Virus record (IMG/VR): IMGVR_UViG_3300046660_000488
Location: 514,293-578,292 of that record
Reading direction: 5' to 3' (one strand)
DNA: 64,000 nucleotides
A program made the translations under genes and the position numbers. Shown here one piece after another: positions 896-41,517 of the stretch (positions within the stretch are counted from its first letter, which is position 1; each line of letters opens with the position of its first letter). The notes under the pieces are model-generated. The model was not told the DNA's origin, made no database searches, and saw only the letters and a program-made list of their open reading frames with translations.

Positions 896-926
896 TTGAC
901 CGGAAAATTCGTTTCCGGCATAAATA
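896..926 (+). promoter_or_regulatory. Promoter for leader/tRNA operon (TTGACC-N17-CATAAA overlapping a TAAATA box)
   Basis: TTGACC at 896-901, TAAATA at 921-926, upstream of SD GGAGA (991-995). Confidence 0.5.
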
Positions 927-1005
927 GAAATATCAGGGGTGCACAACGCACCTCGGAAACCAATTCGCCCCTCGGGGCTTTCACCATCTAGGAGACTGAA
1001 TTTCA

Positions 1006-1146
1006 ATGTTCGCCGTGGCCACCCACATCCCAGCAAATTTCGTCGTCGGCGCCTTCGCCGTCGCGATGCCTGCTGTCGTGGCCCCGATGAATCAAATTCA
1101 GCCCACCGTCGCCGCCCAGTTTGGGCACGGAGGTTTGCACTCGTGA
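1006..1146 (+). CDS. Putative attenuator leader peptide, 46 aa (MFAVATHIPANFVVGAFAVAMPAVVAPMNQIQPTVAAQFGHGGLHS)
   Basis: SD GGAGA then ATG at 1006, TGA at 1144-1146; followed by a terminator; absent from the supplied ORF track. Confidence 0.8.
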   Translation: MFAVATHIPANFVVGAFAVAMPAVVAPMNQIQPTVAAQFGHGGLHS

Positions 1147-1184
1147 TCAGAAGCTGAGAAATCAGCATCCAATCAGAGCGAAGC

Positions 1185-1219
1185 AAGCCTCCAAGGGAAA
1201 CCTCGGAGGCTTTTTCTTT
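1185..1219 (+). terminator. Intrinsic terminator (attenuator) upstream of first tRNA
   Basis: AAGCCTCC (1185-1192) / GGAGGCTT (1205-1212) + TTTTTCTTT; alternative partner GGAGGTTT at 1129-1136. Confidence 0.85.
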
Positions 1220-1259
1220 GGCCTCTCTTCAACCTCCAACCGTCCCTCGATTGTTTCGT

Positions 1260-1334
1260 GGTTCATTAGCTCAGCGGTAGAGCAATCGCTTGATAAGCGA
1301 TAGGTCGCTGGTTCGAATCCAGCATGAACTACCA
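1260..1334 (+). tRNA. tRNA-Ile(GAT)
   Basis: Cloverleaf, loop TTGATAA, TTCGAAT T-loop, encoded CCA. Confidence 0.95.
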
Positions 1335-1365
1335 AACAGTCGAGAGACAACCCCGAGTACTTTGT

Positions 1366-1439
1366 TCTTCTATAGCTCAGCCCGGTAGAGCAATCGCTTG
1401 ATAAGCGATAGGCCGTAGGTTCAAATCCTACTGGAAGAA
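1366..1439 (+). tRNA. tRNA-Ile(GAT), no encoded CCA
   Basis: TCTTCTA/TGGAAGA acceptor, loop TTGATAA; acceptor stem extended by flanks. Confidence 0.85.
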
Positions 1440-1457
1440 CAAAGTACTTGGGTCCAC

Positions 1458-1532
1458 GGGCCTGTAGTTCAACGGGAGAACGTCTGCATTACAAGCAGAA
1501 TGTCGGGGGTTCAACTCCCTCCGGGCCTACCA
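1458..1532 (+). tRNA. tRNA-Val(TAC)
   Basis: Cloverleaf, loop ATTACAA, CCA. Confidence 0.9.
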
Positions 1533-1737
1533 AAATACTGCTTGACAACGGTTCAACCGAACTTTAGGCAAGCAACCGCGCTCTTCGGGAAGCTCTCTTT
1601 GCTTACCGGACGGATTCCAAAACCTACCATAGGTGCGGAGTCGTGTAAAGGGGCCGGGGTCTTTGACATCGTTGATTTGCGTAACGAATTGGTCGGGCTT
1701 TACCAGAGCCCGGCCGACTTCGGGGACGTGTGTTTGA

Positions 1738-1809
1738 TGAGGGATAGTTCAGCGGTAGAACGCCTGTCTCTGGAACAGGATGTCGTAGGTTCGATCCCTA
1801 CTCCCTCAT
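1738..1809 (+). tRNA. tRNA-Gln(CTG), no encoded CCA
   Basis: TGAGGGA/TCCCTCA acceptor, loop CTCTGGA; 16-bp flanking extension. Confidence 0.85.
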
Positions 1810-1830
1810 CAAACACACGTCCCCATAGGT

Positions 1831-1906
1831 TCGGGGGTAGTTCAGTTGGTAGAACGGCAGTTTTTGGTACTGCATGTCGAAGGTTCGAGTCCTTCTCCCC
1901 GATCCA
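1831..1906 (+). tRNA. tRNA-Gln(TTG)
   Basis: Cloverleaf, loop TTTTGGT, CCA. Confidence 0.9.
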
Positions 1907-1928
1907 AACACTCAGTATTCATCCTTGT

Positions 1929-2014
1929 TGGGGAATGGTGTAATGGTAACATCCCGGCCTTTGACTCCGGAGACCGAGAAGGATTTGTAGGTTCGAGCCC
2001 TACTTCCCCAGCCA
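1929..2014 (+). tRNA. tRNA-Gln(TTG) with long variable region
   Basis: TGGGGAA/TTCCCCA acceptor, loop CTTTGAC, 16-nt variable region, CCA. Confidence 0.85.
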
Positions 2015-2043
2015 GCATGAATATTGAAGACAATGTACTTTGA

Positions 2044-2120
2044 CGCGGAGTGGAGCAGTCAGGTAGCTCGTTTGGCTCATAACCAAAAGGTCGCGGGATC
2101 GAAGCCCGCCTCCGCATCCA
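2044..2120 (+). tRNA. tRNA-Met(CAT), initiator-like (C1.A72)
   Basis: CGCGGAG/CTCCGCA acceptor, loop CTCATAA, T-loop ATCGAAG, CCA. Confidence 0.9.
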
Positions 2121-2129
2121 AGTACATTG

Positions 2130-2359
2130 AGGCCGCGTAACAAGAGAGTGAAGCAGTGATGCCCCGTCATCTGTACCTGACGGGGAGGCCAGAAACAGAC
2201 CGTGCATACGCCCCACGGTCTCTAAATATGGAACACGGACCCACTGGGGCCGTGCGGGAGCCAGCACGACCCGCCGTGGTCTAAGTCCGTAAGGGGCAGA
2301 AAGCGGCACACCCGGTACTGGCGGGTAACCTATTTGGTCGAATGACCATCACCTTTTTT

Positions 2360-2360
<1 letters not shown>
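2130..2360 (+). ncRNA. Candidate structured RNA of unknown family
   Basis: Dense helices 2162-2169/2178-2185, 2197-2204/2214-2221, 2234-2238/2250-2254, 2269-2275/2320-2326; no convincing ORF. Confidence 0.4.
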
Positions 2361-2437
<77 letters not shown>

Positions 2438-2455
2438 ATTGTCCATGTGCTTCGT

Positions 2456-2532
2456 CTAGGCGTAGCGCAGTCTGGTAGCGCGCCTGCTTTGGGAGCAGGA
2501 TGTCGCAGGTTCGAATCCTGCCGCCTAGACCA
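2456..2532 (+). tRNA. tRNA-Pro(TGG)
   Basis: Cloverleaf, loop TTTGGGA, CCA. Confidence 0.95.
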
Positions 2533-2555
2533 AGCACATGGACTTTCACCTACGG

Positions 2556-2638
2556 CAGTCGGTGAGGATGTAACAGGTTCGATCCCTGACCACAGGCTCT
2601 TGCGAGCGTGTGAGTAAGCCCATCCAAACCGACTACTG
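2556..2638 (+). ncRNA. Candidate Y-RNA-like (permuted tRNA-like) RNA
   Basis: Terminal stem AGTCGGT/ACCGACT + GGATG/CATCC enclosing a T-arm CAGG-TTCGATC-CCTG and a further hairpin; no anticodon arm or CCA. Confidence 0.4.
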
Positions 2639-2639
2639 A

Positions 2640-2727
2640 TCCTCACGACCCAGCTTGGTGACGGGCGCCGACTGTTAATCGGATGACATGGAAATGTGGC
2701 AAGGTTCGAAACCTTGGTGAGGAACCA
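2640..2727 (+). tRNA. tRNA-Asn(GTT) with long variable arm
   Basis: TCCTCAC/GTGAGGA acceptor, loop CTGTTAA, variable hairpin ACAT-GGAA-ATGT, CCA. Confidence 0.85.
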
Positions 2728-2797
2728 TTTCGCAGTTGACTTGCATTTAAGTGCTTGTCATAAATAAGGAACACGAAGGTGCTTCGGCACACTTTGT

Positions 2798-2873
2798 TCT
2801 CTCGTAGCTCAGTTGGTAGAGCGTCTGACTGTTAATCAGAATGTCGTAGGTTCGAGTCCTACCGGGGGAGCCA
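2798..2873 (+). tRNA. tRNA-Asn(GTT)
   Basis: Canonical cloverleaf, G73, CCA. Confidence 0.95.
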
Positions 2874-3011
2874 TTTCTACTACGGTGAGCAAGTAACCGC
2901 CTAACGTCCTTTGGACGAAGGTGCTCCAGCACAAGACGCTGGGCTGACAAAGCACTTGCACAATTCTCTTATCCTGCTTTTCGGTGTTTCGCCAATTTTC
3001 GGGATAACGAT

Positions 3012-3087
<76 letters not shown>

Positions 3088-3151
3088 ATTTTCTAATCTC
3101 GCGCAGGGCGCCGTGATGAACGGATAAGTCCGCTGCACGCCTTTCTTGGAT

Positions 3152-3257
3152 GGGCTGGACGCCTCCTGACATCGACGTCAGGGTAGAGGTACGGAACCTC
3201 GGGCTACGGCGACAGGGTTCGCGACCCTACGCGGTTCGATCCCGCGCCGGTCCACCA
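3152..3257 (+). ncRNA. tRNA-like RNA with alanine acceptor identity and no canonical D/anticodon arms
   Basis: GGGCTGG/CCGGTCC acceptor (G3.U70), A73, CCA, T-arm CGCGG-TTCGATC-CCGCG; 106 nt. Confidence 0.7.
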
Positions 3258-3266
3258 AGCAGTTTT

Positions 3267-3342
3267 GGGGCATTAGCTCATCTGGTAGAGCGCGACAATC
3301 GCAATGTCGAGGTGAGCGGTTCAAGTCCGCTATGCTCCACCA
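3267..3342 (+). tRNA. tRNA-Ala(CGC)
   Basis: Cloverleaf, loop ATCGCAA, G3.U70, CCA. Confidence 0.95.
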
Positions 3343-3343
3343 A

Positions 3344-3646
3344 TCACCGGCCGTTCAGGAATTTCTCCGAGCAGATGTAATCGCAGACGGAGAACACCAC
3401 GGCTTCCGCACCAGACTCGAAGGCGTCGCTGCTGTGATCGCCGGACCACTGGGGCTTCGCGAAACTGCACGACACGCCGTCCTCGTGGACGCCGACGTCG
3501 ATGATGTGGCCTTCGCCTTCGAACTTGGTCAGCGTCTCTTTCGCCCACACCACCGCTTCATAGAGGTCTTCGGTGATCTCGGATGGGACATTCGCATACA
3601 TGGCGAAAATCTGGTCCTTGAGCGCTTGGGGATAGTGGGCGGTCAT
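3344..3646 (-). CDS. Hypothetical protein, antisense within tRNA array
   Basis: 100-aa ORF filling the gap between tRNAs, coding-like composition. Confidence 0.7.
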   Translation of the reverse strand: MTAHYPQALKDQIFAMYANVPSEITEDLYEAVVWAKETLTKFEGEGHIIDVGVHEDGVSCSFAKPQWSGDHSSDAFESGAEAVVFSVCDYICSEKFLNGR

Positions 3647-3709
3647 GACGATCTCGGGTTTGGTTTACCAAATCCTACACACAACACCCGGCGGGTTCAA
3701 CCCCGCTAC

Positions 3710-3785
3710 GGGGCATTAGCTCATCTGGTAGAGCGCCTGTTTTGCAAGCAGGAGGTGTGGGGTTCGAGTCCCCAATGCTCCACCA
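3710..3785 (+). tRNA. tRNA-Ala(TGC)
   Basis: Cloverleaf, loop TTTGCAA, CCA. Confidence 0.95.
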
Positions 3786-3791
3786 AACAAT

Positions 3792-3866
3792 GCGTCTGTA
3801 GCTCAGTGGGAGAGCGCTTCCGTGACATGGAAGAGGCCGACAGTTCAATCCTGTCCAGATGCACCA
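3792..3866 (+). tRNA. tRNA-Val(GAC)
   Basis: Cloverleaf, loop GTGACAT, CCA. Confidence 0.95.
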
Positions 3867-3940
3867 TTTCACTACCCAACCCCGGAGGATAACCAAATGA
3901 CCCCGCTAAACGCAGGAAAGTAAGCAAGAAATTCCGAAAG

Positions 3941-4219
3941 ATGATCGACGTGTACGGGATATTCACCCGAGACATTGAAGAGCATCTTGACTTCAGTGAC
4001 GACATGCTCTTGGAAATGTACCAAGCAGAGTCAGTCGGTGGAGACTGTCATCATCGGAATGGCTTCTACCATGGAAAGAAATTCATGGATGTGAGCGTCA
4101 AGATGTGGCGCGAGGACATGTCGAAAGGCACGTTGTTCCTCTGCGAACTCTACGACGATCCTCTCCTGCCCAACTGGTGGTTGGACAAAATCTTCGGTCG
4201 GTCTGGTCCTCCAGACTGA
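3941..4219 (+). CDS. Hypothetical protein (true start may be the out-of-frame ATG at 3897)
   Basis: 92-aa ORF; frame is open from 3893; strong SD GGAGG precedes ATG 3897. Confidence 0.7.
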   Translation: MIDVYGIFTRDIEEHLDFSDDMLLEMYQAESVGGDCHHRNGFYHGKKFMDVSVKMWREDMSKGTLFLCELYDDPLLPNWWLDKIFGRSGPPD

Positions 4220-4226
4220 CCAACAT

Positions 4227-4303
4227 GTAGCCGTAGCTCAGTCTGGTAGAGCGCCTGCCTGAAAAGCAGGGCGTCGGTGGTTCAAATCCACCCGGTTGCA
4301 CCA
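4227..4303 (+). tRNA. tRNA-Phe(GAA)
   Basis: Cloverleaf, loop CTGAAAA, CCA. Confidence 0.95.
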
Positions 4304-4304
4304 T

Positions 4305-4871
4305 TTACTCCTTCTGGAGTTTCTTTTCTCGCCAGAGGCGGCTGTTGGGGCCATCGCCATTCCACCCGTCAAACAGCCCTTCATCCTGTGCGGCTCGCAT
4401 CATCGGAGCAACACGAATCCACGCTTGGTACGGCATAGTTCCTCGGGTGTGGTTGCATCGAACACACGAGGTGTTGACGTTGTTCTGCAAGTGGCCAAGG
4501 CTATTGTCGATCCGGTCCAGCGTAATGCGGACCTCTGGTGGTTCAACACCGCAATAAAAGCACGGCTTGGCCACGCATTCGGCCACGAATTCGAGCGTGA
4601 GGTCGCAGTCGCGGTTCTTTCGCTTGTCGGTATAGCGGCAGTCTTGCAGCACGTTGCGGGCTACGGTCATGTGATCGTTCTCTCTCCGAGCTTTGCGACG
4701 AACCGCATGGCGACGCTCTTCGGCTTGTTGGAACCCTTCCGGGTTGCTGATGAACTGTTCGCGGCGGCAGGGGCCGCATTTCTTTCGGCGCCGACCGGCG
4801 CTCATGTGGAACGCGCTCTCGGGGCGATCCTCTCCGCAATATTTGCACAACATAGTGCCATTAAGGCACAT
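4305..4871 (-). CDS. HNH (His-Me finger) homing endonuclease-like protein
   Basis: CKYC/CGPC zinc motifs and CFYCG...LDRIDNSLGHLQNNVNTSCVRCN HNH signature. Confidence 0.85.
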   Translation of the reverse strand: MCLNGTMLCKYCGEDRPESAFHMSAGRRRKKCGPCRREQFISNPEGFQQAEERRHAVRRKARRENDHMTVARNVLQDCRYTDKRKNRDCDLTLEFVAECVAKPCFYCGVEPPEVRITLDRIDNSLGHLQNNVNTSCVRCNHTRGTMPYQAWIRVAPMMRAAQDEGLFDGWNGDGPNSRLWREKKLQKE

Positions 4872-4907
4872 CTGGTTTTCCAAATTCAATATTTGGTTAA
4901 CCACTTT

Positions 4908-4984
4908 CAGGGCGTAGCGCAGCATGGTAGCGCACTTGGTCGGGAACCAAGGGGTCGCAGGTTCAAATCCTGCCGTTCTGACCA
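4908..4984 (+). tRNA. tRNA-Pro (loop TCGGGAA; GGG in canonical register)
   Basis: C1-G72, A73, CCA; non-canonical C33/A37. Confidence 0.85.
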
Positions 4985-5003
4985 TTTCGCCTACGGGCAT
5001 TAT

Positions 5004-5080
5004 CTATGTGTAGCTCAGTCTGGTAGAGCGCTGCTTTCGGGAAGCAGAGGCCGCAGGTTCAAATCCTGCCACGTAGACCA
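5004..5080 (+). tRNA. tRNA-Pro(CGG)
   Basis: Cloverleaf, loop TTCGGGA, CCA. Confidence 0.95.
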
Positions 5081-5103
5081 AAACACCGGCCACGAGCCAT
5101 CAT

Positions 5104-5180
5104 CTGAGTGTAACGCAGTCTGGTAGCGTGCCTGTTTCGGTAACAGGAGGTCGCGGGTTCAAATCCTGCCACTCAGACCA
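5104..5180 (+). tRNA. tRNA-Pro(CGG), U37 variant
   Basis: Cloverleaf, loop TTCGGTA, CCA. Confidence 0.9.
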
Positions 5181-5299
5181 ATTTCCTCGAACGAGGATAC
5201 GACTTTGGGAAGCTGACCGTTCCAGTGAGTTCGGCAGGGATGACCACCCGGCAGCTAGGCCTCGTCAGCCCGGCATGTCAGGCTAACCCAATTGACCAC

Positions 5300-5376
5300 G
5301 GTGCTGTAGCTCAGTCTGGTAGAGCAGCGGGCTCATAACTCGCTTGTCGCAGGTTCAAATCCTGCCAGCACCACCA
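5300..5376 (+). tRNA. tRNA(CAT): elongator Met or Ile2
   Basis: Cloverleaf, G1-C72, loop CTCATAA, CCA; Met versus lysidine-Ile cannot be resolved by eye. Confidence 0.9.
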
Positions 5377-5382
5377 ACCTTC

Positions 5383-5457
5383 GGGTGATTAGCTCAGTGG
5401 TAGAGCGCTGCTTTCACACGGCAGAGGTCACTGGTTCAAGCCCAGTATCACCCACCA
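5383..5457 (+). tRNA. tRNA-Val(CAC)
   Basis: Cloverleaf, loop TTCACAC, CCA. Confidence 0.95.
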
Positions 5458-5485
5458 AGAAAAAGGGGCCGAAGCCCCCTGATCC
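5458..5485 (-). terminator. Terminator-like hairpin for the minus-strand gene
   Basis: AAAAAGGGG-CCGAAG-CCCC immediately beyond the stop at 5486. Confidence 0.5.
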
Positions 5486-5728
5486 TTACTCTTCGACGTA
5501 CTGGATTTCTCGCCAAAAATCTCCGGTCGGCGTCACGGTAAAACCACCGGTGTTGGAGACGATCCTGACGTAATGTTCTGCCAGTTCGAGCACGGCCGTT
5601 TCGAGATAGCGGCCGTCGTCTTCGGTGGTGGACGTCAGAACGACCGTGCCGGTCGTGTTGAGCGGATCGAGCGCACCGGCGCGAACGGTGTCGAGCAACG
5701 CTTCGAAGTATACGTCGTAAGTAGCCAT
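5486..5728 (-). CDS. Hypothetical protein
   Basis: MATYDVYF start with SD AAGGA upstream. Confidence 0.7.
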   Translation of the reverse strand: MATYDVYFEALLDTVRAGALDPLNTTGTVVLTSTTEDDGRYLETAVLELAEHYVRIVSNTGGFTVTPTGDFWREIQYVEE

Positions 5729-5803
5729 GAAATGTGTCCTTGAAATGGGTTTAGTATCCAGCCACAAGGATAGCACTGGCCGCTTATTATAAGCAAAATA
5801 TAC

Positions 5804-5879
5804 GCCGCCTTAGCTCAGTTGGTAGAGCGCGTCCTTGGTAAGGACGAGGCCACGGGTTCAAGTCCCGTAGGTGGCTCCA
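5804..5879 (+). tRNA. tRNA-Thr(GGT)
   Basis: Cloverleaf, loop TTGGTAA, CCA. Confidence 0.95.
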
Positions 5880-5893
5880 TTTTCCCTCCTGAT

Positions 5894-5968
5894 GCCGGGG
5901 TAGCTCAGGGGTAGAGCAGCGGGCTGAAAATCCGCGTGTCGGAGGTTCGAATCCTCTCCCCGGCACCA
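5894..5968 (+). tRNA. tRNA-Phe(GAA)
   Basis: Cloverleaf, loop CTGAAAA, CCA. Confidence 0.95.
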
Positions 5969-5969
5969 T

Positions 5970-6044
5970 GGTCGCGTAGCTCAGCGGGAGAGCGTCCCCT
6001 TGACGTGGGGAAGGTCGCAGGTTCAATCCCTGCCGCGACTACCA
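5970..6044 (+). tRNA. tRNA-Val(GAC)
   Basis: Cloverleaf, loop TTGACGT, CCA. Confidence 0.95.
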
Positions 6045-6074
6045 TTTTTCTCAACCAGAAAGGAACCGACTCCC

Positions 6075-7171
6075 ATGGGGTTCAGCCGCTAAGTCCAGAG
6101 AGCCTTCAACGGTATCTGGCGATCAAAGACCTAACTGACCCGGCGACGGGTAAACACGCAATCAACGTTGTCCTCCAGAAATTGACGAAGGCGGTCCAAG
6201 ACTGGGCGGGTTTACACCCGGAAGTCCTGCGTTCCTCCCCAATCGTTTCCATCCAAGACAATTACGACCGCCTCTACTATGAGGCGGACGCTGTCGCACG
6301 CTCGTCGCGCTATTCGCATTATGTGGATGACACCCACATCTTGCGGACGCACACGACGGCGGCCGTGCCCGGCTATCTGCGCGAGACCACGGACGACCGT
6401 CTGATGGTTCTGCCGGGCATCGTCTATCGCCGCGACGTCATGGACAAGATGCACGTCGGCGAACCACACCAAGTCGATCTGTGGATCGTCAAGCAGGCCC
6501 GCCTGCGGCGCCGCGATCTTGAGGCCATGATCTCGGCCATCATGACTGCGATCCTACCCGGCCGCGTGTACCGCTGCAACGAGACCATCCATCCCTACAC
6601 CGTCAACGGCCTTGAGGTCGAAGTGCAGGTTGGCGACCGTTGGGTCGAGGTCTTGGAATGCGGCGAGGCCCACCCATGGGTTCTGAACGACGCTGGGCTG
6701 TCTTCAGCCACATGGTCGGGACTGGCCATGGGCATCGGTCTGGACCGTCTGGTGATGCTCCTGAAGGGCGTGGAGGACATCCGGCTGCTACGGAGCACCG
6801 ACAAGCGCGTCTACGGCCAGATGCAGACCATGCAGCCCTATCTACCGGTCAGCGATCAGCCGAGCGCTAAGCGGGACCTGTCCATCGTCGTTGACGAAGT
6901 GGACATGGAACTGTTGGGCGACAAGGTCCGCACTTTGCTGGGCGACCGGGCCGAGTGGATGGAGGAAATCATCCACGTCGGCGACTACGGCTGGCACGAT
7001 GTTCCGGACGCTGCTCGCCAACGTCTGGGTATGGGGCAGGATCAACGGAACCTCGTTATCCGGCTGATCATGCGCTCGCCGACCCAGAGCATCCCTCGCG
7101 AGGTCGCAAACGAGGTCTACGCGCAAGTCTACGAAGGTCTGCATCAGGGCTCCACGGTCGGCTATCGCTGA
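6075..7171 (+). CDS. Monomeric PheRS-like class II ligase (catalytic domain + FDX-ACB); start requires a -1 shift at codon 2-3
   Basis: LRTHTTA, motif 2 PGIVYRRD..H..EPHQVD, motif 3 GLAMGIGLDRLVML, C-terminal RDLS..RSPTQS FDX-ACB-like; SD-preceded ATG 6075 is out of frame. Confidence 0.85.
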
Positions 7172-7204
7172 CCGTGGATGGTTCTGTGCCACCTAAATAG
7201 TTCC

Positions 7205-7594
7205 ATGGATCGTGAAGCCAAACTCGCTGAACTCATTGATCGCGTCAAGGATTTGCCGGACAAGGCGACCACGCGCGGATACACCTCATATCTGATCATC
7301 GTTCCCCATCATGACATGGCGGGCGACGTATCGATGGCCGTCTCTGAAGAATTCAGGGAATTTGGATACGGCGTTGACAAGGTGACGAAGTCTGAAGTTC
7401 GTGGAGACGAGTTTAGGGTCCTCGTGCGGCCCATCAGTGCTGCTGCGACGAACATCCACAACTTGACCTTCCACGTGTTCTGCATTCCGGGTGATGACGG
7501 ACTGACGGGTCATCAGAAGCAAACATTGCAGAAGATGCTTGAAGCGTTCAGCTACAAGGCACTGGAAACTGCTGATCTCCGCATCGTCTACTGA
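7205..7594 (+). CDS. Hypothetical protein
   Basis: ORF downstream of TAAATA (7194). Confidence 0.7.
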   Translation: MDREAKLAELIDRVKDLPDKATTRGYTSYLIIVPHHDMAGDVSMAVSEEFREFGYGVDKVTKSEVRGDEFRVLVRPISAAATNIHNLTFHVFCIPGDDGLTGHQKQTLQKMLEAFSYKALETADLRIVY

Positions 7595-7600
7595 ATCTCG

Positions 7601-7628
7601 TTGACGAGATCGAAAATGTGTGCATAGT
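7601..7628 (+). promoter_or_regulatory. Sigma70-type promoter
   Basis: TTGACG-N16-CATAGT with TG extended -10. Confidence 0.55.
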
Positions 7629-7649
7629 GCGATCCGAACAGGAGGCACT

Positions 7650-7865
7650 ATGGAAACTTGGGTTCTCGTAATCGTCGTGTGGATGTCGCCGAGCTTTAGC
7701 CATAGCGGTGGTTCTGGCGCGCTGGCGATCACCAACGTCCCCGGCTATGCGTCGTGGGACGAGTGCAATCGCGCGGCTGGCACGGTCTCCAAGAGCGGCG
7801 GAGAAACCAAGGGCTACTGCGTCCCCGGTCCCAAGACCATCGTCGTCAAGCCGAAGGGCAAGTGA
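7650..7865 (+). CDS. Small exported/membrane protein
   Basis: SD GGAGG; hydrophobic N-terminus; two Cys. Confidence 0.75.
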   Translation: METWVLVIVVWMSPSFSHSGGSGALAITNVPGYASWDECNRAAGTVSKSGGETKGYCVPGPKTIVVKPKGK

Positions 7866-8833
7866 TGCACCCGACCCGCGACCGTCTCATCAAGATCATC
7901 GAGCGCACCGAGAACGAGATCGGCTCCGACGCGGCGGCCGACGAAATCCTCGCGCTGCTGCGTGAGCCGCCCAGAAACCACATGGACGTGGTCTGGCCGG
8001 ACGAGGACGAACTGAACGTTCGCCGGACCATGCTCATGGCCGACGTCGTCGCCTTCATCGCGCCCGAGGCGCGCAAGGATGGCAACGGCGGGTACGCGCC
8101 CTGCGACGATGCTGACATCCGGGCGCTGAACGCGCTCATCCGCGAAATCATCGACATGCGCTTCGTTCGAGACAGCGACCGTGGACAGGTCGTGGATTTC
8201 GCCACGGTCAACCGTCTCGAAAATCGCCTCCACACCTTCTACGAACCCCACTCGCCGGACATGCGGGACGAAGCCTCGCCTTCGGAGCGCACCGTCTACG
8301 CCATGCAGATCGCCACGGTCGCTGGGCTGATGGCCGCCGAGACCGGCCGCATGCTGAACCAACTGGGTCGTCGCATGCAGTTTCAAATCGAGGCCGACGA
8401 CAAGAAAGCCTTGCAGGACGCCGAAGCTCGCCGCGACATGGAGGCGGCTGAGCTTTTCGTCTCGCTGGTCTCGACCCGGCCGTTCCACCAATCGCTCTCC
8501 GACTATCGGTCGGCGGCGGCCGAGCTAGGCCCTCGCAACGAGGCGGTGAAGCTGATGCGCGACGCGCTGGCCAAGTCGATCCTGCCGGACACCGAGAACG
8601 CGGCCATCCACATCGACCGCTTGATCGACGAGAACAAGATGGACGAAGCCATCGCCGCTCTGGAGGATGGTTTCGACAAATGGTTCCGTGGCGCCTTCTC
8701 AGAGCAGCGTGAGCGCATCAACACCTACTATCGCGGACTTCGTGAGCGGGCGCGTCGCGCCAAGCTCCCGGCTGATCCGGCGTGGCAGATTTTCATTTCG
8801 CCGCAGGAACCCACGGGAGACCAGTATGCGTGA
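7865..8833 (+). CDS. Hypothetical protein
   Basis: 322-aa ORF translationally coupled to the upstream gene. Confidence 0.8.
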   Translation: MHPTRDRLIKIIERTENEIGSDAAADEILALLREPPRNHMDVVWPDEDELNVRRTMLMADVVAFIAPEARKDGNGGYAPCDDADIRALNALIREIIDMRFVRDSDRGQVVDFATVNRLENRLHTFYEPHSPDMRDEASPSERTVYAMQIATVAGLMAAETGRMLNQLGRRMQFQIEADDKKALQDAEARRDMEAAELFVSLVSTRPFHQSLSDYRSAAAELGPRNEAVKLMRDALAKSILPDTENAAIHIDRLIDENKMDEAIAALEDGFDKWFRGAFSEQRERINTYYRGLRERARRAKLPADPAWQIFISPQEPTGDQYA

Positions 8834-10688: not shown

Positions 10689-10943
10689 TTATTCCGTGAT
10701 CTCGACGAGACGAAAAGCGACGGCCTCGCAGGGGAACTTTTCCTTGGCGGCTTGCTTCTCGGCCTCTTCCTCGACGATCCACAGACGGTCGAAGCGATGA
10801 CCCCAGCGGTCTTCGTCGGTGTGCGTGTTGTGGGCGTTGAAGATTTGCTTGAAACGGCCGTCGCCGATCCGACGCACTTTCCACACCCGCGACGGATCGT
10901 CGGGTGTGGTGATGTGGCGAGTGTTCTCGTAGACGTAGGTCAT
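10689..10943 (-). CDS. Hypothetical protein
   Basis: Coupled minus-strand ORF. Confidence 0.7.
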   Translation of the reverse strand: MTYVYENTRHITTPDDPSRVWKVRRIGDGRFKQIFNAHNTHTDEDRWGHRFDRLWIVEEEAEKQAAKEKFPCEAVAFRLVEITE

Positions 10944-11611
10944 CAGGCGACTTTCGCGGCGTCTTCGGCTTCTCGTTCGGCGCGGCGCGCCGCTCGATAG
11001 TCGTTGATGATCTTCTCGACGCTCGCATAGACGGACGGATCACCGTCCTTCAGGTGCGGCAGGAGATCACGCTTCTCCGGAACGTAGCGCTGGGCGAAAT
11101 CCGGATCGTCGTTGATGATCGAATCCAAGTTGTCCTCGGAATCGACCAGCTTGATCGTCTGGACTTCGGCTGGCTGCGCGGCCGTGTGATCGCGGTTCAG
11201 CGCCATCCGGACCTTGCGGTTTCCATCCCACGGCATGGCGACGTCGGTCAGGCCGTCCACGTACAGAGCGACCAGATCGCCGAATTCCTGACGGATCAAC
11301 TCGATGGTGATGCCGGGGACCATGTACAGAACGATGTCACCAGCCTTGAAGGCCGGGCGAGAACAGAATTCGCCGGTCTTGACGATGACCTCGCCATTAC
11401 CATCAACGAATTTTCGAGTGTCCTCGACGGTGTCATGCAGCAGGGCTGCGACAACCATTTCGACGGTGGCGCCGGGCAGTGCGGCGATCCGCAGGGCCAG
11501 ACGGCGCGGGTGGACGATATACGGCTCGTCCGTATACCTACGCCGCTGACCGACAGCAGCGTGCGCGACCATGGCGAACAGGTCGGCCTTCACGATTAAA
11601 GGATGGTTCAT
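10943..11611 (-). CDS. HD-domain hydrolase, RelA/SpoT hydrolase (SAH/Mesh1)-like
   Basis: AH..GQ.R....PYIVHP, AALLHDTVEDT, EFGD.VA..VDGLTD, IKL.D..DN motifs. Confidence 0.85.
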   Translation of the reverse strand: MNHPLIVKADLFAMVAHAAVGQRRRYTDEPYIVHPRRLALRIAALPGATVEMVVAALLHDTVEDTRKFVDGNGEVIVKTGEFCSRPAFKAGDIVLYMVPGITIELIRQEFGDLVALYVDGLTDVAMPWDGNRKVRMALNRDHTAAQPAEVQTIKLVDSEDNLDSIINDDPDFAQRYVPEKRDLLPHLKDGDPSVYASVEKIINDYRAARRAEREAEDAAKVA

Positions 11612-11659
11612 ATCTATCATGCCGCGCATTATGCGGCATGGATACAATTTCGTCAACCA

Positions 11660-25823: not shown

Positions 25824-25848
25824 TCCTTCGGGATATGAGGTACGGATG

Positions 25849-25879
25849 AGGCCGGGAGAAATCCCGGCCTTTTTCTTTT
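25849..25879 (+). terminator. Intrinsic terminator
   Basis: AGGCCGGGA-GAAA-TCCCGGCCT + T tract. Confidence 0.85.
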
Positions 25880-25890
25880 GGGGAACGAGA

Positions 25891-29452: not shown

Positions 29453-29523
29453 ACGAAATATATCGACCGAAATCCAACGCCGTCGTATCCTGACCAAATA
29501 GGGCGTTGTGAGTATTTTTGGTC

Positions 29524-29922
29524 ATGGTCAAGCTGTTCATTGACGACGAGCGCTTCCCGCCGGGGGACGGCGAGGGATGGATCGTCGTGCGGACAATGGA
29601 AGAGGGTCAGGCGTACATCGCCCAGCACGGTTGCCCGACCTTCATCAGCTTCGACCATGACCTTGGGTACGACGGCCTCGCCCTTCTCCCGACCGGCTAC
29701 GACTTCGCCAAATGGCTGGTAGATCAGGATATGGACGCCAAGGGCCATTTCTTCCCAGACGGTTTCTGGTACTACGTCCACAGCCAGAACCCGGTCGGCG
29801 CTCGCAACATCGACGAGTTGATGTCGAGCTATTTGCTTGTGCACCGTGAAATGCCGGAGGGGATTACTATCGGATGGACGGCTGAGCCGACCACAGCGGG
29901 CTTCAGCATCCGCTATCGGTAG
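29524..29922 (+). CDS. Cyclic-phosphate-processing receiver domain protein
   Basis: LFIDDER.P, ISFDHDLG, TGYD, VHSQNPVG motifs. Confidence 0.85.
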   Translation: MVKLFIDDERFPPGDGEGWIVVRTMEEGQAYIAQHGCPTFISFDHDLGYDGLALLPTGYDFAKWLVDQDMDAKGHFFPDGFWYYVHSQNPVGARNIDELMSSYLLVHREMPEGITIGWTAEPTTAGFSIRYR

Positions 29923-30636: not shown

Positions 30637-30640
30637 GACC

Positions 30641-31296: not shown

Positions 31297-31364
31297 ATTC
31301 AATCTGGTTGACCAAACTGTCCTTTCTCTGGTAAATAGAGTTTCCTCTAACAGGAAGAAGGACA

Positions 31365-31568
31365 ATGGCGAAGCGACCCCCGCGCAACCCGCGCAACCCG
31401 CACGCCCAAGCCCTCTTCACCTGCAAGCTCTTCGCTCCGAAGTCCGTGCCGGTGAAAAAGGGAAAGGGCATGAAGTACGACCGCAAGAAGGATCGGGGAG
31501 TGGACCTCTCCGGTCCTTATTTTTTGCCTGAATACTTGGGGTTTTTGAGACCAGTGTTTTTCGCTTAA
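31365..31568 (+). CDS. arfA: Alternative ribosome-rescue factor A homolog
   Basis: N...ALF...LF.......KKGKG.KY.RK aligns with ArfA [30 protein letters not shown] AAGGA. Confidence 0.8.
   Translation: MAKRPPRNPRNPHAQALFTCKLFAPKSVPVKKGKGMKYDRKKDRGVDLSGPYFLPEYLGFLRPVFFA
31488..31525 (+). terminator. Intrinsic terminator inside arfA CDS (non-stop mRNA)
   Basis: 13-bp stem AAGGATCGGGGAG/CTCTCCGGTCCTT, loop TGGAC, then ATTTTTT; stop codon about 40 nt further on. Confidence 0.8.
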
Positions 31569-34210: not shown

Positions 34211-34221
34211 TAAATATCGCC

Positions 34222-35693: not shown

Positions 35694-35785
35694 GATTCTG
35701 TACAAGCTATTATGCGAGTATTTAGGTCAGAAAAATCTGCTCATTTTCCACTTCGGCGTAGCAACGCACATGGGTAAATAGTTCC

Positions 35786-37076: not shown

Positions 37077-37085
37077 ATACTCTTC

Positions 37086-37886: not shown

Positions 37887-37922
37887 ATGGTCAGGAATTT
37901 CCCGACCTGATAAACATGAACG

Positions 37923-38243: not shown

Positions 38244-38274
38244 ACGTCGGTGTTTATTTCGTCGTAAATATTTG

Positions 38275-39033
38275 ATGCGTATCCATATTCTCTCTGATCT
38301 CCATTTCGAAAAACACAAGATGGACCCAGACTACGTCCCGCCTGAGTGCGACGTGGTCGTGCTGGCTGGCGACATTTCGCCGGGCCTGCCGGGCATCGAG
38401 TGGGCCAAGGCCACCTTTAGCGTCCCTGTGATCTACGTCATGGGCAATCACGAGTACTGGCATCAGCGCGGCTTCTACAAGATCGTGGACAAGCTGAAGG
38501 CTGCGACCGCAGGGTCCAACGTCCACCTGCTCCAGAACGAGGCGGTGGTCATTGACGGTGTGCGTTTCATCGGCGCCACCTTGTGGGCGGATTTCAACCT
38601 GACCGGCCTTGGACCCTACAGCAAGGTCGTCTGCCATCGCGCGCTGGCGGACTATGACGCAGCGATCCACCTCGACGACGGAACGTTCCTTGGAACCGAC
38701 GAGGCCATGGACGAGCATTTCATGTCGAGGGATTACATCCACACCCAGTTGCGTGAGCAATTTGACGGCAAGACCGTGGTCGTCACCCACTACGGCTGTT
38801 CGCCGAAATCGGTTCATCCGCGCTGGGTGTCTAACCTCGCAACGCCGGGTTACGTCTCCGACCTCGACTACATGATGCACGAGTGTGGGCCGGTCCTATG
38901 GATTCATGGCCACGTCCACGACGCCTTCGACTATCAGGTCGCCGAGACGCGCGTGGTCACCAACCCGCGCGGCTATCCGGCCGAGCGCGAGGCTGGGAAC
39001 GGTTTCATCCGTGAGTTGGTGGTGACGATCTAG
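38275..39033 (+). CDS. Calcineurin-like metallophosphoesterase
   Basis: SDLH, AGDI, GNHE, THY, HGHVH motifs. Confidence 0.92.
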   Translation: MRIHILSDLHFEKHKMDPDYVPPECDVVVLAGDISPGLPGIEWAKATFSVPVIYVMGNHEYWHQRGFYKIVDKLKAATAGSNVHLLQNEAVVIDGVRFIGATLWADFNLTGLGPYSKVVCHRALADYDAAIHLDDGTFLGTDEAMDEHFMSRDYIHTQLREQFDGKTVVVTHYGCSPKSVHPRWVSNLATPGYVSDLDYMMHECGPVLWIHGHVHDAFDYQVAETRVVTNPRGYPAEREAGNGFIRELVVTI

Positions 39034-39632
39034 CTCGTCAGGCCTTCAAGGGATTCGAGGTCGGCGAGGATAGCGTCGATCTCGGCCCGGTCTCTCGCCA
39101 ATTCCTCTGGTGATTTCTGGCGCTTGGGGCGGTCATCCATCCAAGGCGTCGGTGGCATACCATGGACCGGCGGCTTGGGGATCGTGCGTTTCAGATCGAA
39201 CGAGGTGAAGACCTTTCGACCGCGCACGACCTTCACCTGCATCTGGTAGCCAAGGCCATCGAATTTGGCGCCCAGCTTCAGGGCCATGCGGTTGTAAAGC
39301 TCATCGCGCCCAGTGTCGTGGAAGCCGACGAAGCCGATCTGTCCGGGGAACTGGTTCTTGATGAAATGAGCCAGACAGTTGATGGCGTAGCCGAACACCT
39401 TCGTTGCCGAAGCGCCCTGCCCGCCGATGTTGTCGTGACGGCCGACCTTGTCGGGGTTTTCGAGATTGGGGACGTCGGCCGTGAAGGCAAACTCGTAGTA
39501 ATCTCCGCCGCCACCGTCGCGTTGGAACGTGGCGGTATAGGGCACGCCGTTGACCGCGAAGGTCGCCTTTGTCGGGCTATGCCACTGGACGCCTTGGCTG
39601 TCGAAGGCTTCGGTGATCTCTTTGTAACGCAT
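39030..39632 (-). CDS. Putative virion-associated protein
   Basis: TAAATA (minus) at 39638-39643; MRYKEITEA N-terminus. Confidence 0.75.
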   Translation of the reverse strand: MRYKEITEAFDSQGVQWHSPTKATFAVNGVPYTATFQRDGGGGDYYEFAFTADVPNLENPDKVGRHDNIGGQGASATKVFGYAINCLAHFIKNQFPGQIGFVGFHDTGRDELYNRMALKLGAKFDGLGYQMQVKVVRGRKVFTSFDLKRTIPKPPVHGMPPTPWMDDRPKRQKSPEELARDRAEIDAILADLESLEGLTS

Positions 39633-39636
39633 GCCC

Positions 39637-39852
39637 TTATTTAGGGTTGGCGTCCGCAATAATCCGGCGCTCGACTTCAGCCTTGGCTCGCGCCAGACCT
39701 TCGTCATCGCGAAAGCCGATGATCCCGCAGCGAGTGCTGTGGGTCACGCCGACCTTGTAGACCTCGTAGGTCCCTTTCTTCTTGCCGTAGGGGACGCGGA
39801 GCACCCAGTAGTCGCCTTTCTCGAAAGCGATGTCTTTTTCTTGGTAGCTCAA
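39637..39852 (-). CDS. Hypothetical protein
   Basis: Coupled ORF, TTG start. Confidence 0.65.
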   Translation of the reverse strand: MSYQEKDIAFEKGDYWVLRVPYGKKKGTYEVYKVGVTHSTRCGIIGFRDDEGLARAKAEVERRIIADANPK

Positions 39853-40190
39853 GCGGCCCTCCGTGCGGTCAGGATCGTGTGGTTCCGATTGAAATTGGGG
39901 TGTAGCGGCTCACCGACCGGGTAGATGCCGGTGGTGTGCCAGACACCATCGTGCTCGAACACCGGCGCCAAGGCGGTTTCGTCATGGACGAAGTACGAGC
40001 GTTTTCGCTTGGTCGAGCCGTCCGGCATGTCGATCAGGAACGTCGTGGCTTTCTTCCCAGCCGTCGCCGACGTCCCACCCTTGCGGCCGTAGCCTGCGGA
40101 GACGCGACGAAGGCTAGGCCGAAGCACGTTCAGACGCTCCATGGCGTCTTGCACCTTCGCTCGTGCGATGACGCGCTCGTCTTCGGTCAT
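39849..40190 (-). CDS. Hypothetical protein
   Basis: MTEDERV start, coupled. Confidence 0.7.
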   Translation of the reverse strand: MTEDERVIARAKVQDAMERLNVLRPSLRRVSAGYGRKGGTSATAGKKATTFLIDMPDGSTKRKRSYFVHDETALAPVFEHDGVWHTTGIYPVGEPLHPNFNRNHTILTARRAA

Positions 40191-40528
40191 CCGAGCACGC
40201 TGATGTCCCAGCGCATCTTCCGGCCCTCGGTGGTGTACGGCGTCTTGAACGGCACACCAAGGCTGGCGCGGGTGACTTGCTGCTCCGGCGGCAGAGCGAT
40301 GGTCTCCGAACCGTAGGGCTCGATGGTCCACCCGGCGGCCTTCAGCGCGTTGATCAGTTGATCGCGGACGGCGTTGAGGTCGTCGCCCCACACTTGGATG
40401 CCGTGGCGGTTCACTTCATAGCGCGCGTGCAGCGGGTCGCGCTCGATCTCGATGGTCTCGCCATTCTGATCGCGCAGCATGGTCCACAGGGCGCGGCGAA
40501 GCTTGGCTTTCTGGTTGGAGCTTGCCAT
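40187..40528 (-). CDS. Hypothetical protein
   Basis: SD GGAGG, coupled. Confidence 0.7.
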   Translation of the reverse strand: MASSNQKAKLRRALWTMLRDQNGETIEIERDPLHARYEVNRHGIQVWGDDLNAVRDQLINALKAAGWTIEPYGSETIALPPEQQVTRASLGVPFKTPYTTEGRKMRWDISVLG

Positions 40529-40530
40529 GA

Positions 40531-40692
40531 TCAGTTGACCTCCATCCAGTTGCGCTCGTCCGAGCCACGACCGGAGAGCAGAATCTTCGAACCATCGGTG
40601 AAGATGATCTCGACCCAGCTAGAGCCGGTCTCGACGCTTTCGACGGTCTTGCCGACAATTTCTTGGCAGGTTTCGCTGTCTTGGCTGTCCAT
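40531..40692 (-). CDS. Small hypothetical protein (53 aa)
   Basis: Read manually, MDSQDSETCQEIVGKTV...; SD GGAGG. Confidence 0.7.
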   Translation of the reverse strand: MDSQDSETCQEIVGKTVESVETGSSWVEIIFTDGSKILLSGRGSDERNWMEVN

Positions 40693-40762
40693 GTCGGCCT
40701 CCGTACTTCGAAAGAGGTGATCCTTCTATAGTATTGGAAGCACAGTGTCAAGCACAGTTATG

Positions 40763-40933
40763 CTATGTCTTGGGACGCCGCTGAAGCTGCAAAGCGAGGG
40801 CCGCGCTTTGGTCGTGCCAGTCGTCTTGGGCCTTGCGGCGCTGGCGGTCACCCGATTCCTTGACGATCATGACCAGAAGATCACGAAGCTCTTCATCGGT
40901 CAGGACGCTGATTTGCTCGGCAGTGATCGGCAT
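40763..40933 (-). CDS. Small hypothetical protein
   Basis: SD GGAGG; MPITAEQ start. Confidence 0.65.
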   Translation of the reverse strand: MPITAEQISVLTDEELRDLLVMIVKESGDRQRRKAQDDWHDQSAALALQLQRRPKT

Positions 40934-40983
40934 AGGAACCTCCCTGAAAGTTGAAAGGGGCCAGATCGCTCTGACCCCTTCCG

Positions 40984-41517
40984 TTACCACTTGATCGCGA
41001 AGTCCTTCCGCCGGACCTTGGCCATCCGACCATCGGGGTGGTGGAACACCAGCCCTTCATGGTCGTGAGCCATCAGCCACGCGACGAGCGCATCATGGGT
41101 GCGCTCGACCTCGACGATCACCGACCCATGCTTCCACAGTTCGTGGTGGGCCAGCTTGTACGGGTTGCTCTGGACCTTCGGGCCAACAAGCTCGTAGGTT
41201 CCATCGCTCAGCCCGTCCTTGAACGCTTCGGCGTGCCAACGGCTCGCCGGATCGTCCATGTCAACCGGAACCCAGTGCGGCCAGTGACCAGTCACCGGGT
41301 CAGCAGCGGGTTCGCAGGGGATCGCCCCGGCCGGAGGGGATTTGCCGTGCTTGGCGTCGAAACGCTTGAACAGCTTCCCGTCACGGATCATGCACGACGT
41401 TCCATCGTGCTTGATAGTGGCGACACCTTCACCGTCCATGACCCACTGAACTTGAACCTCGTCGGTTGCCCTACGGGTAGCCCGGTCAATCACGAACACA
41501 GTCTTCATCTTTTGCAT
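40984..41517 (-). CDS. ATP-dependent RNA ligase-like nucleotidyltransferase (DUF5565/RLIG1-like)
   Basis: Motif I KHDGT, III YELVG, IV EGLVF, V MAK; HWPHWVP segment. Confidence 0.75.
   Translation of the reverse strand: MQKMKTVFVIDRATRRATDEVQVQWVMDGEGVATIKHDGTSCMIRDGKLFKRFDAKHGKSPPAGAIPCEPAADPVTGHWPHWVPVDMDDPASRWHAEAFKDGLSDGTYELVGPKVQSNPYKLAHHELWKHGSVIVEVERTHDALVAWLMAHDHEGLVFHHPDGRMAKVRRKDFAIKW

Follow-up and report, generated by a model that had tools for sequence, protein, structure and literature searches.

Phage transfer RNA (tRNA) arrays are commonly viewed as constitutive cargo that serves codon usage or anti-defence. Jumbo phages have already been described with tRNAs, RNA ligases, cyclic-phosphate-processing receiver (cREC) proteins, phosphoesterases and an HD-domain alarmone hydrolase; the same overview names PTH2 and IF3, and neither ArfA nor regulation of the kind considered below (PMC7824862). 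In bacterial ArfA and BrfA, a terminator lies within the open reading frame (ORF), the mRNA is non-stop, and the product is destroyed by trans-translation unless transfer-messenger RNA (tmRNA) is saturated (PMC8012679). On functional trans-frame products of hungry-codon frameshifting, a 2016 review of recoding stated that 'no examples are known' (PMC5009743). Our literature search found no later paper linking phenylalanyl-tRNA synthetase (PheRS) to programmed frameshifting in bacteria, and no description of a tRNA operon controlled by a leader peptide. Here we analyzed a stretch of 64,000 nucleotides (nt), called the window, which covers positions 514,293 to 578,292 of the 578,292-bp contig IMG/VR 3300046660_000488 from a rhizosphere metagenome, and in it a tRNA array with its leader, a PheS-related ligase gene and an ArfA-like gene. 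Judging from the DNA and its relatives, we lean toward the view that this huge phage carries a translation-support toolkit, three parts of which would each be under a ribosome-operated control element of its own. The mechanisms are all of known kinds; their use on tRNA arrays, and on an aminoacyl-tRNA synthetase-like gene by way of a hungry sense codon, appears to be new.

The window was phage-like, with a GC content of 58%, and the host of its phage is likely an alphaproteobacterium. Genes were called from codon usage, and about 80 window ORFs were scanned against Pfam. No close relative was found when deposited phages were searched at the DNA level, and the window tRNAs alone gave matches. 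Syntenic sister phages were present in an NCBI contig of 569,661 bp (L005), two JGI contigs (L006 and L007), a 415-kb IMG/VR contig (L088) and three further loci (L101, L102 and L103).

Leaders and terminators of the tRNA arrays

The first array comprised 24 tRNA genes called by ARAGORN on the plus strand (1260-6044), with 16 distinct anticodons for nine amino acids (Ile, Val, Gln, Met, Pro, Asn, Ala, Phe and Thr). Rfam recovered 23 of these genes, the one not reported being Asn-GUU at 2640-2727. Upstream of the array and its leader was a promoter-like site, P1 (896-925, plus strand), with TTGACC and ATAAAT boxes 18 nt apart. Its motif class, TTGAC-N17-20-TAAAT, was found three times in 64 kb when 0.07 copies were expected: at P1, at the ArfA-like gene and at 2736. 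P1 was followed by leader ORF 1 (1006-1146, plus strand), a proposed codon-sensing leader peptide of 46 codons with the Shine-Dalgarno (SD) sequence AGGAG 11 nt upstream. An intrinsic terminator, made of a GCCTCC...GGAGGC hairpin and a T-run (1187-1219, plus strand), lay between this ORF and the first tRNA gene, tRNA-Ile at 1260. The gap from the terminator to tRNA-Ile was about 40 nt, and no promoter motif was seen in it. A long hairpin, the putative antiterminator (1129-1192, plus strand), was formed by pairing of the 3' end of the leader ORF (1129-1138) with the 5' arm of the terminator (1183-1192). The layout of promoter, SD, leader ORF, terminator and array was kept in seven phages, namely the window phage, L005, L006, L088, L101, L102 and L103. 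Rfam found no known leader or cis-regulatory family over 850-1300, and IMG/VR scans with the leader-1 DNA pattern and peptide alignment matched the source contig alone.

The codons of leader 1 mirrored the array behind it. Of its 37 sensing codons, 35 were for amino acids in the array set of nine (p = 3e-10); a scan of 13,288 windows from the proteome of this phage gave no stretch of comparable composition. A readable codon was present for each of the 16 array anticodons, and 36 of 45 codons were array-readable against a background of 0.43; both values were reached by none of 20,000 simulated ORFs. Agreement extended to the isoacceptors, since Ile was encoded only by ATT or ATC and Thr by ACC, which fits tRNA-Ile(GAU) and tRNA-Thr(GGU). 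Leaders served all anticodons of their own arrays (16/16, 14/14, 12/12 and 13/13), and this was equalled by 0 to 27 of 20,000 simulations.

Five relatives carried a second array on the minus strand, with tRNAs for Arg, Leu and Lys and, in some, for Met, Ile-UAU and Gly. This array had its own promoter, short leader ORF (M-T-R-R-L... or M-I-R-L...) and terminator. Arg, Leu and Lys made up 12 of the 17 early codons of leader 2 (p = 8e-6); leader 1 has zero or one such codon. The rare codons TTA, CTA, CGA and ATA in leader 2 corresponded to isoacceptors encoded in the second array. ATA accounted for only 11 of 711 Ile codons in the phage (1.5%). It was present in leader 2 of L101, L102 and L103, and tRNA-Ile(UAU) was found in the second array of L102 and L103, the array of L101 being cut off by the end of the locus. 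In L005 and L006, leader 2 had ACC at the ATA position, and the visible part of the L006 array was without tRNA-Ile(UAU). A search of IMG/VR for leader 2 with a back-translated pattern gave no match.

The RNA structures were compared across leaders. In the window, the antiterminator was the best alternative partner of the terminator 5' arm, with a folding energy (dG) of -19.9 against -15.8 for the terminator. In eight of nine leaders, the best alternative partner of this arm lay in the 3' part of the ORF, at -16 to -23 kcal/mol, which was equal to or better than the energy of the terminator hairpin. When seven leader-1 sequences were aligned, 90.7% of the antiterminator cells were paired, compared with 30-40% in slid controls. 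Six pairs had compensatory changes, and the covariation score exceeded that of all 500 shuffles. The terminator of the seven phages had 96.8% of cells paired and was invariant, with no double changes.

Taken together, the leader with its antiterminator and terminator is probably a ribosome-mediated attenuator of the tRNA array. The array would be under transcription attenuation of the trp/his type, the leader holding at least one codon for each downstream isoacceptor. If any served tRNA became scarce, the ribosome would stall in the leader and leave the GGAGG at the ORF 3' end free; this segment would then pair with the 5' arm of the terminator, and RNA polymerase would continue into the array. 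With smooth decoding, the ribosome at the stop codon would cover the GGAGG segment, the terminator would form and transcription would stop. The earlier note on this DNA, made from the window alone, had placed the tRNA array behind a codon-sensing attenuator, and this now gained comparative support from the codon mirror in seven phages, the separate leader of the second array and the covariation of the antiterminator.

Some observations weigh against an attenuator. Equilibrium folds with the ribosome footprint masked favored the terminator in most states and were not discriminating alone; for this reason, we infer the kinetic step. The leader ORFs might instead encode small functional peptides, hydrophobic and membrane-type for leader 1 and basic amphipathic for leader 2, so that the codon likeness would be a by-product of composition, the hairpins plain terminators, and the arrays expressed from other promoters or by constitutive read-through. 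This agrees with the dominance of the terminator in the equilibrium folds and with the fair conservation of the leader-1 peptide (column identity of 71% over the 12 recorded variants), which could be a functional micropeptide. Most variants start with M-S-L-V-A-R-H and hold invariant Gly codons unserved by the array. However, the unserved residues (N-terminal S, L, R and H and the invariant Gly) gather at the ends of the ORF, where a stall would not free the antiterminator, and a nearly Leu-free hydrophobic peptide would be odd. Two unrelated peptides each fit their own array to the isoacceptor level, down to rare ATA, TTA, CTA and CGA codons where the cognate tRNAs are encoded, and the antiterminator both overlaps the 3' end of the ORF and covaries. 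A promoter-like site of the same rare motif is also present within the array (2736-2765, plus strand), directly 5' of tRNA-Asn at 2798, and the distal tRNAs and the ligase may be transcribed from it without attenuation. This site was not kept in L005, where the equivalent gap is 21 nt, and the gap between the terminator and the first tRNA is free of a promoter motif. We therefore consider the functional-peptide explanation improbable and retain the attenuator.

Several further features of the leaders and arrays were recorded. Rfam gave a sub-threshold match of the leader terminator (1182-1222) to ctRNA_p42d, a Rhizobium plasmid antisense RNA (28.5 bits, gathering score 50), which probably reflects mere hairpin shape. 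Contigs from other soil samples were about 96% alike over window positions 900-1300. Among the differences listed for them, two fell in the leader ORF, one synonymous and one Thr to Asn, both being array amino acids; several others clustered at 979-995 in the 5' untranslated region, and there were at least 95 further differences. Two tRNA calls were overlong, Gln-UUG at 1929-2014 (86 nt) and Asn-GUU at 2640-2727 (88 nt). Long Gln and Asn tRNAs were found at equivalent places in sister phages, and they may hold an insertion or intron or be pseudo-tRNAs. An ORF of 92 codons lay inside the array just 5' of a tRNA-Phe gene and had the same length in four phages (window 3941-4219, plus strand; L005 9280-9558; L006 9476-9754; L007 3415-3693); it had no match in Pfam or NCBIfam. 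More well-scoring coding ORFs were present between the tRNAs, some on the minus strand (e.g., 3344-3646). On the minus strand of L005 (about 1400-1480) and L006 (about 1330-1410), a TTGACA box and a strong GC hairpin (GCCCCCGG...CCGGGGGC) sat between the leader-2 terminator and the first tRNA-Arg. ARAGORN called a tRNA-Gly of 87 nt with the unusual anticodon ACC within the Arg/Leu array of L103 (2367-2453, minus strand). Caulobacter phage CcrSC, probed for generality, had a cluster of three tRNAs preceded by a phage tmRNA and no leader. ARAGORN called this tmRNA as a permuted two-piece molecule directly 5' of the tRNA-fMet/Met/Cys cluster (10443-10875 of L099, record positions 148442-148874), a stretch unannotated in the GenBank record.

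The frame break ahead of the PheS-related ligase

The array ended with tRNA-Val at 6044 and was followed by an SD (GAAAGGAA), 10 nt and the ATG at 6075 of a mini-ORF encoding M-G-F-S-R. The SD and mini-ORF spanned 6058-6092 on the plus strand, the codons after ATG being GGG, TTC (6081-6083), AGC, CGC and TAA (6090-6092). The body of a PheS-related ligase, of the SrmL family and with an architecture like that of mitochondrial PheRS, occupied 6077-7171 (plus strand) in the -1 frame relative to this ATG. In the frame of the ligase, no ATG, GTG or TTG was found from the tRNA to 6182, a position already within the catalytic-domain match, and the gene caller of the source contig had started the ligase at the TTG at 6182. 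An assembly error at the GGGG run was rejected, since the source sample, assembled independently at a depth of about 175x, gave an identical sequence over 3027-6899.

The break was compared in a clade of 11 ligase loci with 58-70% protein identity, made up of the window phage, three sister-phage lineages and seven alphaproteobacterial genomes (five metagenome-assembled genomes, one of them a 7.2-Mb chromosome, a Roseinatronobacter isolate and a Rhizobium rhizogenes isolate). All 11 loci had the same order: SD, ATG or TTG, GGR or GAG, TTY, zero to two variable codons, a stop codon and the enzyme in the -1 frame. An in-frame start codon was wholly absent in five of the 11 genomes. Remoter relatives, at 53% identity or less, had an ordinary in-frame ATG or GTG start; they comprised about 75 bacterial loci (Actinomycetota, Myxococcota, Patescibacteria and other groups) and three huge phages. 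One locus of an intermediate clade (P0110) was not in the comparison. Pairwise differences in the 16 codons after the mini-ORF stop were 324 synonymous and 185 non-synonymous in the -1 frame, compared with 49/426 and 33/444 in the other two frames. This is protein-coding selection in the -1 frame, indicating that the segment of 16 codons from the mini-ORF stop to D-L-T-D is translated. The Phe codon was invariant in all 11 loci and forced a disfavored GTT or ATT in the coding frame; the flanking codons of the mini-ORF varied. In Roseinatronobacter, TGA directly follows the Phe codon, which limits the shift to ATG GGG TTT. In sister phages, tRNA-Phe genes were found on both sides of the ligase.

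Expression of the ligase thus very probably needs a -1 recoding event. The shift site reads G_GGR_UUY or G_GAG_UUU and does not match the canonical slippery heptamer X_XXY_YYZ; no conserved downstream stimulatory structure was found, the consensus fold being -5 kcal/mol with no covariation. With neither a heptamer nor a downstream structure, the site fits single P-site slippage rather than the dnaX or viral type. We propose that the ligase would come solely from ribosomes which initiate on the mini-ORF and then slip one base backward. The fMet-Gly-tRNA in the P site would re-pair on G_GGR while the Phe codon in the A site awaits Phe-tRNA, and the SD, 12-13 nt upstream, may aid the slip. Ribosomes that do not slip would make M-G-F-x-x and terminate. 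Synthesis of the enzyme would therefore rise when charged tRNA-Phe is short, and we slightly favor the view that the frame break acts as a Phe sensor.

The ligase had a class II core (tRNA-synt_2d, PF01409, Pfam E 5e-35) and a weak FDX-ACB match, and its best PDB matches were mitochondrial PheRS (E 2e-22). In NCBIfam, it was assigned to NF051887, 'PheS-related mystery ligase SrmL', with 439 bits against a cutoff of 300. We call it PheRS-like because the substrate is deduced from the tRNA-Phe context and the Phe-codon gate, and the SrmL enzyme may charge tRNA-Phe. This identity is weighed down by the PheS models, which stayed far below their cutoffs (TIGR00469, 120 against 258; TIGR00468, 112 against 237), and by the gene neighborhood of the ligase, in which a comparison of about 80 bacterial loci showed nothing conserved. 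A literature search on 'SrmL' yielded nothing relevant. The earlier note had described a PheRS-like gene entered through a -1 shift at a Phe codon. The frame break with its Phe codon held in all 11 members of the clade, including a cultured Rhizobium; the enzyme itself belongs to SrmL, not PheS, in NCBIfam.

The frame break might be a real recoding site and yet not a Phe sensor, either as a constitutive shift of fixed ratio that holds the enzyme at a low level or as an upstream ORF followed by a downstream start, in which case the enzyme may be no PheRS. The start would then be a weak or non-canonical CTG, TTG or ATG near R-Y-L-A-L-R-D-L-T-D. An internal ATG, at M-R-D-L-T-D, is present in many of the bacterial homologs, and it is there that the NCBIfam model and numerous gene calls start. 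One relative (L004) naturally starts at M-I-D-L-T-D, and three genomes of the clade have an in-frame TTG three codons 5' of the conserved segment. A downstream start is countered by the coding selection on the 16 codons before D-L-T-D, and in the window phage by the want of ATG, GTG and TTG as far as 6182, inside the catalytic-domain match. As for the sensor, GGR is replaced in the sister-phage lineages by GAG, for which re-pairing in the -1 frame is poor; a stimulatory structure was not found, and curators list the family as a 'mystery ligase'. On the other side are the Phe codon, unvarying in 11 of 11 loci among variable neighbors in the mini-ORF, and the tRNA-Phe genes that flank the ligase in sister phages. 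Weighing both sides, we regard the non-sensor explanation as unlikely, and a recoding site that senses Phe is preferred.

Two side observations concern this gene family. Gene callers (P0001-P0120) placed the N-terminus at various internal TTG, GTG or ATG codons or added long, spurious stretches upstream, and the NCBIfam model begins beyond the segment that coding selection marks as translated. The 5'-end annotation of this family is probably wrong across the alphaproteobacterial clade. In a 517-kb relative (L003), the product of a gene at 6895-7992 is 365 aa long and combines a DxDGT HAD-phosphatase motif with a P-loop, in the Pnkp-like order of phosphatase then kinase. The end of this gene overlapped the start of the ligase homolog by TAATG, an RNA-repair linkage that was absent from the window.

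The ArfA-like gene and the accessory genes

An ORF of 67 codons (31365-31568, plus strand) encoded an ArfA-like protein with a conserved core at residues 1-54, recognized through Pfam, a family profile and the ESM atlas. It was preceded by a promoter-like site of the P1 motif class (31308-31336, plus strand), and this class of motif also preceded the ArfA-like homologs in three related but rearranged contigs (L094, L095 and L097). An exhaustive HMMER search recovered about 15 small homologs with 50-64% identity over residues 1-54 only, their tails being unalignable. Three candidates from this search (P0122, P0135 and P0136) were set aside, P0122 being the translation of a tandem repeat. Pfam ArfA was matched by 14 of 17 family members (E up to 0.01, best 8e-6). 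The only PDB matches of the family profile were five ArfA chains, aligned on the KKGKG-Y-RK core, and ArfA made up 65 of the 100 nearest clusters in the ESM atlas, which is built on a language model. No ArfA-like protein was found by tblastn against phage records, by a word-based protein search or with the single sequence against PDB.

Inside the ORF was an intrinsic terminator (31488-31527, plus strand) with a 13-bp stem, a 5-nt loop and a T-run, the hairpin occupying 31488-31518. It ended about 40 nt 5' of the stop codon. A hairpin and U-tract were found at the same position of the ORF in L094, L095/96 and L097, which with the window makes four lineages, and the stem sequences differed. The S-G-P-Y/F-L motif, seemingly conserved, was the translated 3' arm and U-tract. 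No in-frame stop preceded the terminator in the four lineages, so a transcript that ends there has no stop codon. The ArfA-like mRNA is accordingly predicted to be non-stop, with a product of about 53-54 residues. Trans-translation would tag this product for destruction, and it would build up only once tmRNA can no longer keep pace.

We think it quite probable that the gene belongs to the ArfA family and hold it likely, from the comparison of lineages, that it is under non-stop control. The opposite possibility, a small basic protein of other function with an ordinary terminator ahead of a spurious ORF extension, draws on the Pfam score of the window protein (PF03889, 19.4 bits, threshold 25.5), the missing PDB match of the single sequence and the unalignable C-terminal tails, whose true stop may be miscalled. 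Assignment to ArfA is also weakened by the E value of only about 0.3 for the five PDB chains and, to our knowledge, ArfA is not typical of Alphaproteobacteria. We give this possibility little credence, because 14 of 17 members matched ArfA, the PDB matches were to ArfA chains alone and on the KKGKG-Y-RK core, and the language-model neighbors were ArfA; moreover, no lineage of the four has an in-frame stop before the terminator, whatever the role of the protein. The arfA homolog with a non-stop mRNA proposed earlier was supported by the family evidence and by the terminator kept within the ORF in four lineages.

Four other genes related to RNA or alarmone metabolism were located. An HD-domain protein of the RelA/SpoT-hydrolase or small-alarmone-hydrolase type (10943-11656, minus strand; Pfam HD_4) matched 4yf1, a Rel hydrolase domain and MESH1 in PDB (E 1e-7 to 1e-2) with the HD motif aligned. 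The alignment was limited to the N-terminal ~60 residues, and the protein is a putative alarmone hydrolase; L005 has a syntenic copy. A cREC_REC protein (29518-29922, plus strand; PF20274, E 5e-23) had homologs with 68% and 54% identity that adjoin the ArfA-like gene, or lie one gene away from it, in L094 and L095. A calcineurin-type metallophosphoesterase (38272-39033, plus strand), recognized by Pfam and otherwise generic, had no sequence match in PDB, and its homolog in L097 (49% identity) lay about 1 kb from the ArfA-like gene. An RLIG1-type ATP-dependent RNA ligase of 177 aa (40984-41517, minus strand, ATG at 41517), with a KxDG motif and its own terminator, matched PDB 9c6l, 'RNA ligase1', with an E of 4e-11. 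No polynucleotide kinase was found in the Pfam scans of the window ORFs, and one may lie elsewhere in the 578-kb genome; as detected in the window, the heal-and-seal route lacks a kinase. The HD, cREC, phosphoesterase and RNA ligase genes are accessories of a kind that jumbo phages ordinarily carry for translation and RNA repair, and they are loosely tied to the switches. The window also held a short ORF with a T4-portal-like segment (18089-18667), an outer-membrane beta-barrel (porin-like) protein uncommon for a phage (25296-25823), a DHFR gene (25846-26430), a DnaB-type helicase gene (42975-44588) and the alpha subunit of a class I ribonucleotide reductase (60964-63441).

All items named in the earlier note were recovered at or near the positions given there. 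It had joined them into one demand-driven counter-defence against tRNA-cleaving defences, in which tRNA would be replaced, recharged, healed and sealed, alarmone removed and ribosomes rescued. Every component family is present, and the concept agrees with published jumbo-phage genomics (PMC7824862). In relatives, the Pnkp-like phosphatase-kinase gene of L003 abuts the ligase homolog. The array with the ligase, and ArfA with cREC (L094, L095) or with the phosphoesterase (L097), recur; no other recurring linkage was seen. Against a single system, the components extend over 40 kb and, as the earlier note had itself observed, are dispersed, with helicase, SNase, porin-like and DHFR genes and many unknowns between them. 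A 5'-kinase was undetected in the window, and the phosphoesterase is of a generic kind. Each switch has a promoter of its own and is self-contained, and no link of any component to a tRNA-cleaving defence was found. We consider the integrated counter-defence rather improbable; three self-contained switches are the reading that we carry forward.

Significance and comparison with known systems

If the attenuators are real, they would be the first attenuation of tRNA genes and would provide a built-in 'tRNA supply meter'. A codon in the leader for each array tRNA would make expression demand-driven and self-limiting, and attenuation would be widened from amino-acid supply to tRNA supply. The SrmL gate, if it works as proposed, would be the first natural hungry-codon -1 frameshift sensor, and the start-Gly-Phe mini-ORF would be a testable natural instance of hungry-codon frameshift regulation (cf. 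PMC5009743). The mini-ORF would also be the first functional clue to the 'mystery ligase' family, for which the cultured Rhizobium member permits genetics, and the annotation of this family can be corrected because gene callers mis-start it everywhere. A phage ArfA with a non-stop device would mean that ribosome-rescue capacity was imported along with its feedback control. Taken jointly, multi-codon attenuators on huge-phage tRNA arrays and SrmL as a stand-by PheRS under a hungry-codon -1 sensor are a tentative proposal, which we place just short of an even chance.

Compared with the known jumbo-phage toolkit, the components are the same, the kinase is undetected here, and the novelty lies in the regulation. 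The T4-type heal-and-seal system consists of Pnkp and Rnl; the window has a KxDG RNA ligase, and a 5'-OH polynucleotide kinase was undetected in its scans. The ArfA-like gene shares with ArfA of E. coli and other bacteria, and with B. subtilis BrfA, a small basic protein, the KKGKG-Y-RK core and a stem-loop or terminator within the ORF, as well as an active product of about 55 residues with a variable, dispensable tail (PMC8012679). It differs from bacterial ArfA in that the family is divergent and phage-encoded, has a phage promoter motif and is linked to cREC or a phosphoesterase. Like the monomeric mitochondrial PheRS (FARS2; 3cmq, 5mgu), the window ligase has a PheS-type core and an FDX-ACB-like C-terminal domain in a single chain; unlike it, the ligase is far under the curated PheS cutoffs and falls in the SrmL family instead.

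The leader resembles the attenuators of amino-acid operons (trp, his, leu, thr, ilv, pheA/pheL and pheST/pheM) in its promoter, its short leader ORF rich in regulatory codons, its mutually exclusive antiterminator and terminator, and the closeness of the leader stop codon to the 5' strand of the antiterminator. In contrast to these, the window device would govern tRNA genes, not biosynthetic or synthetase genes, and does so in a phage; its leader would sense nine amino acids and 16 isoacceptors, whereas theirs sense one to three.

The frame break has in common with prfB (RF2) and dnaX a short zero-frame ORF and a functional protein read in a different frame, a slow step in the A site that would depend for its rate on the activity of the product itself, and an SD-like element upstream, here 12-13 nt before the shift codon. 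This spacing reportedly falls in the range that Larsen et al. in 1994 found to stimulate -1 shifts in dnaX. The window shift would be -1 and not +1 as in prfB, and the sensed codon is a sense codon (Phe) rather than a stop. It would take place at codons 2-3, straight after initiation, and the site has neither X_XXY_YYZ nor a downstream structure. With the hungry-codon frameshifting of E. coli reporters it shares the proposed leftward slip of peptidyl-tRNA while the A-site codon is vacant. Such frameshifting has so far been recorded only as an error or a laboratory phenomenon, unlike the natural use that we propose for it at the SrmL gene.

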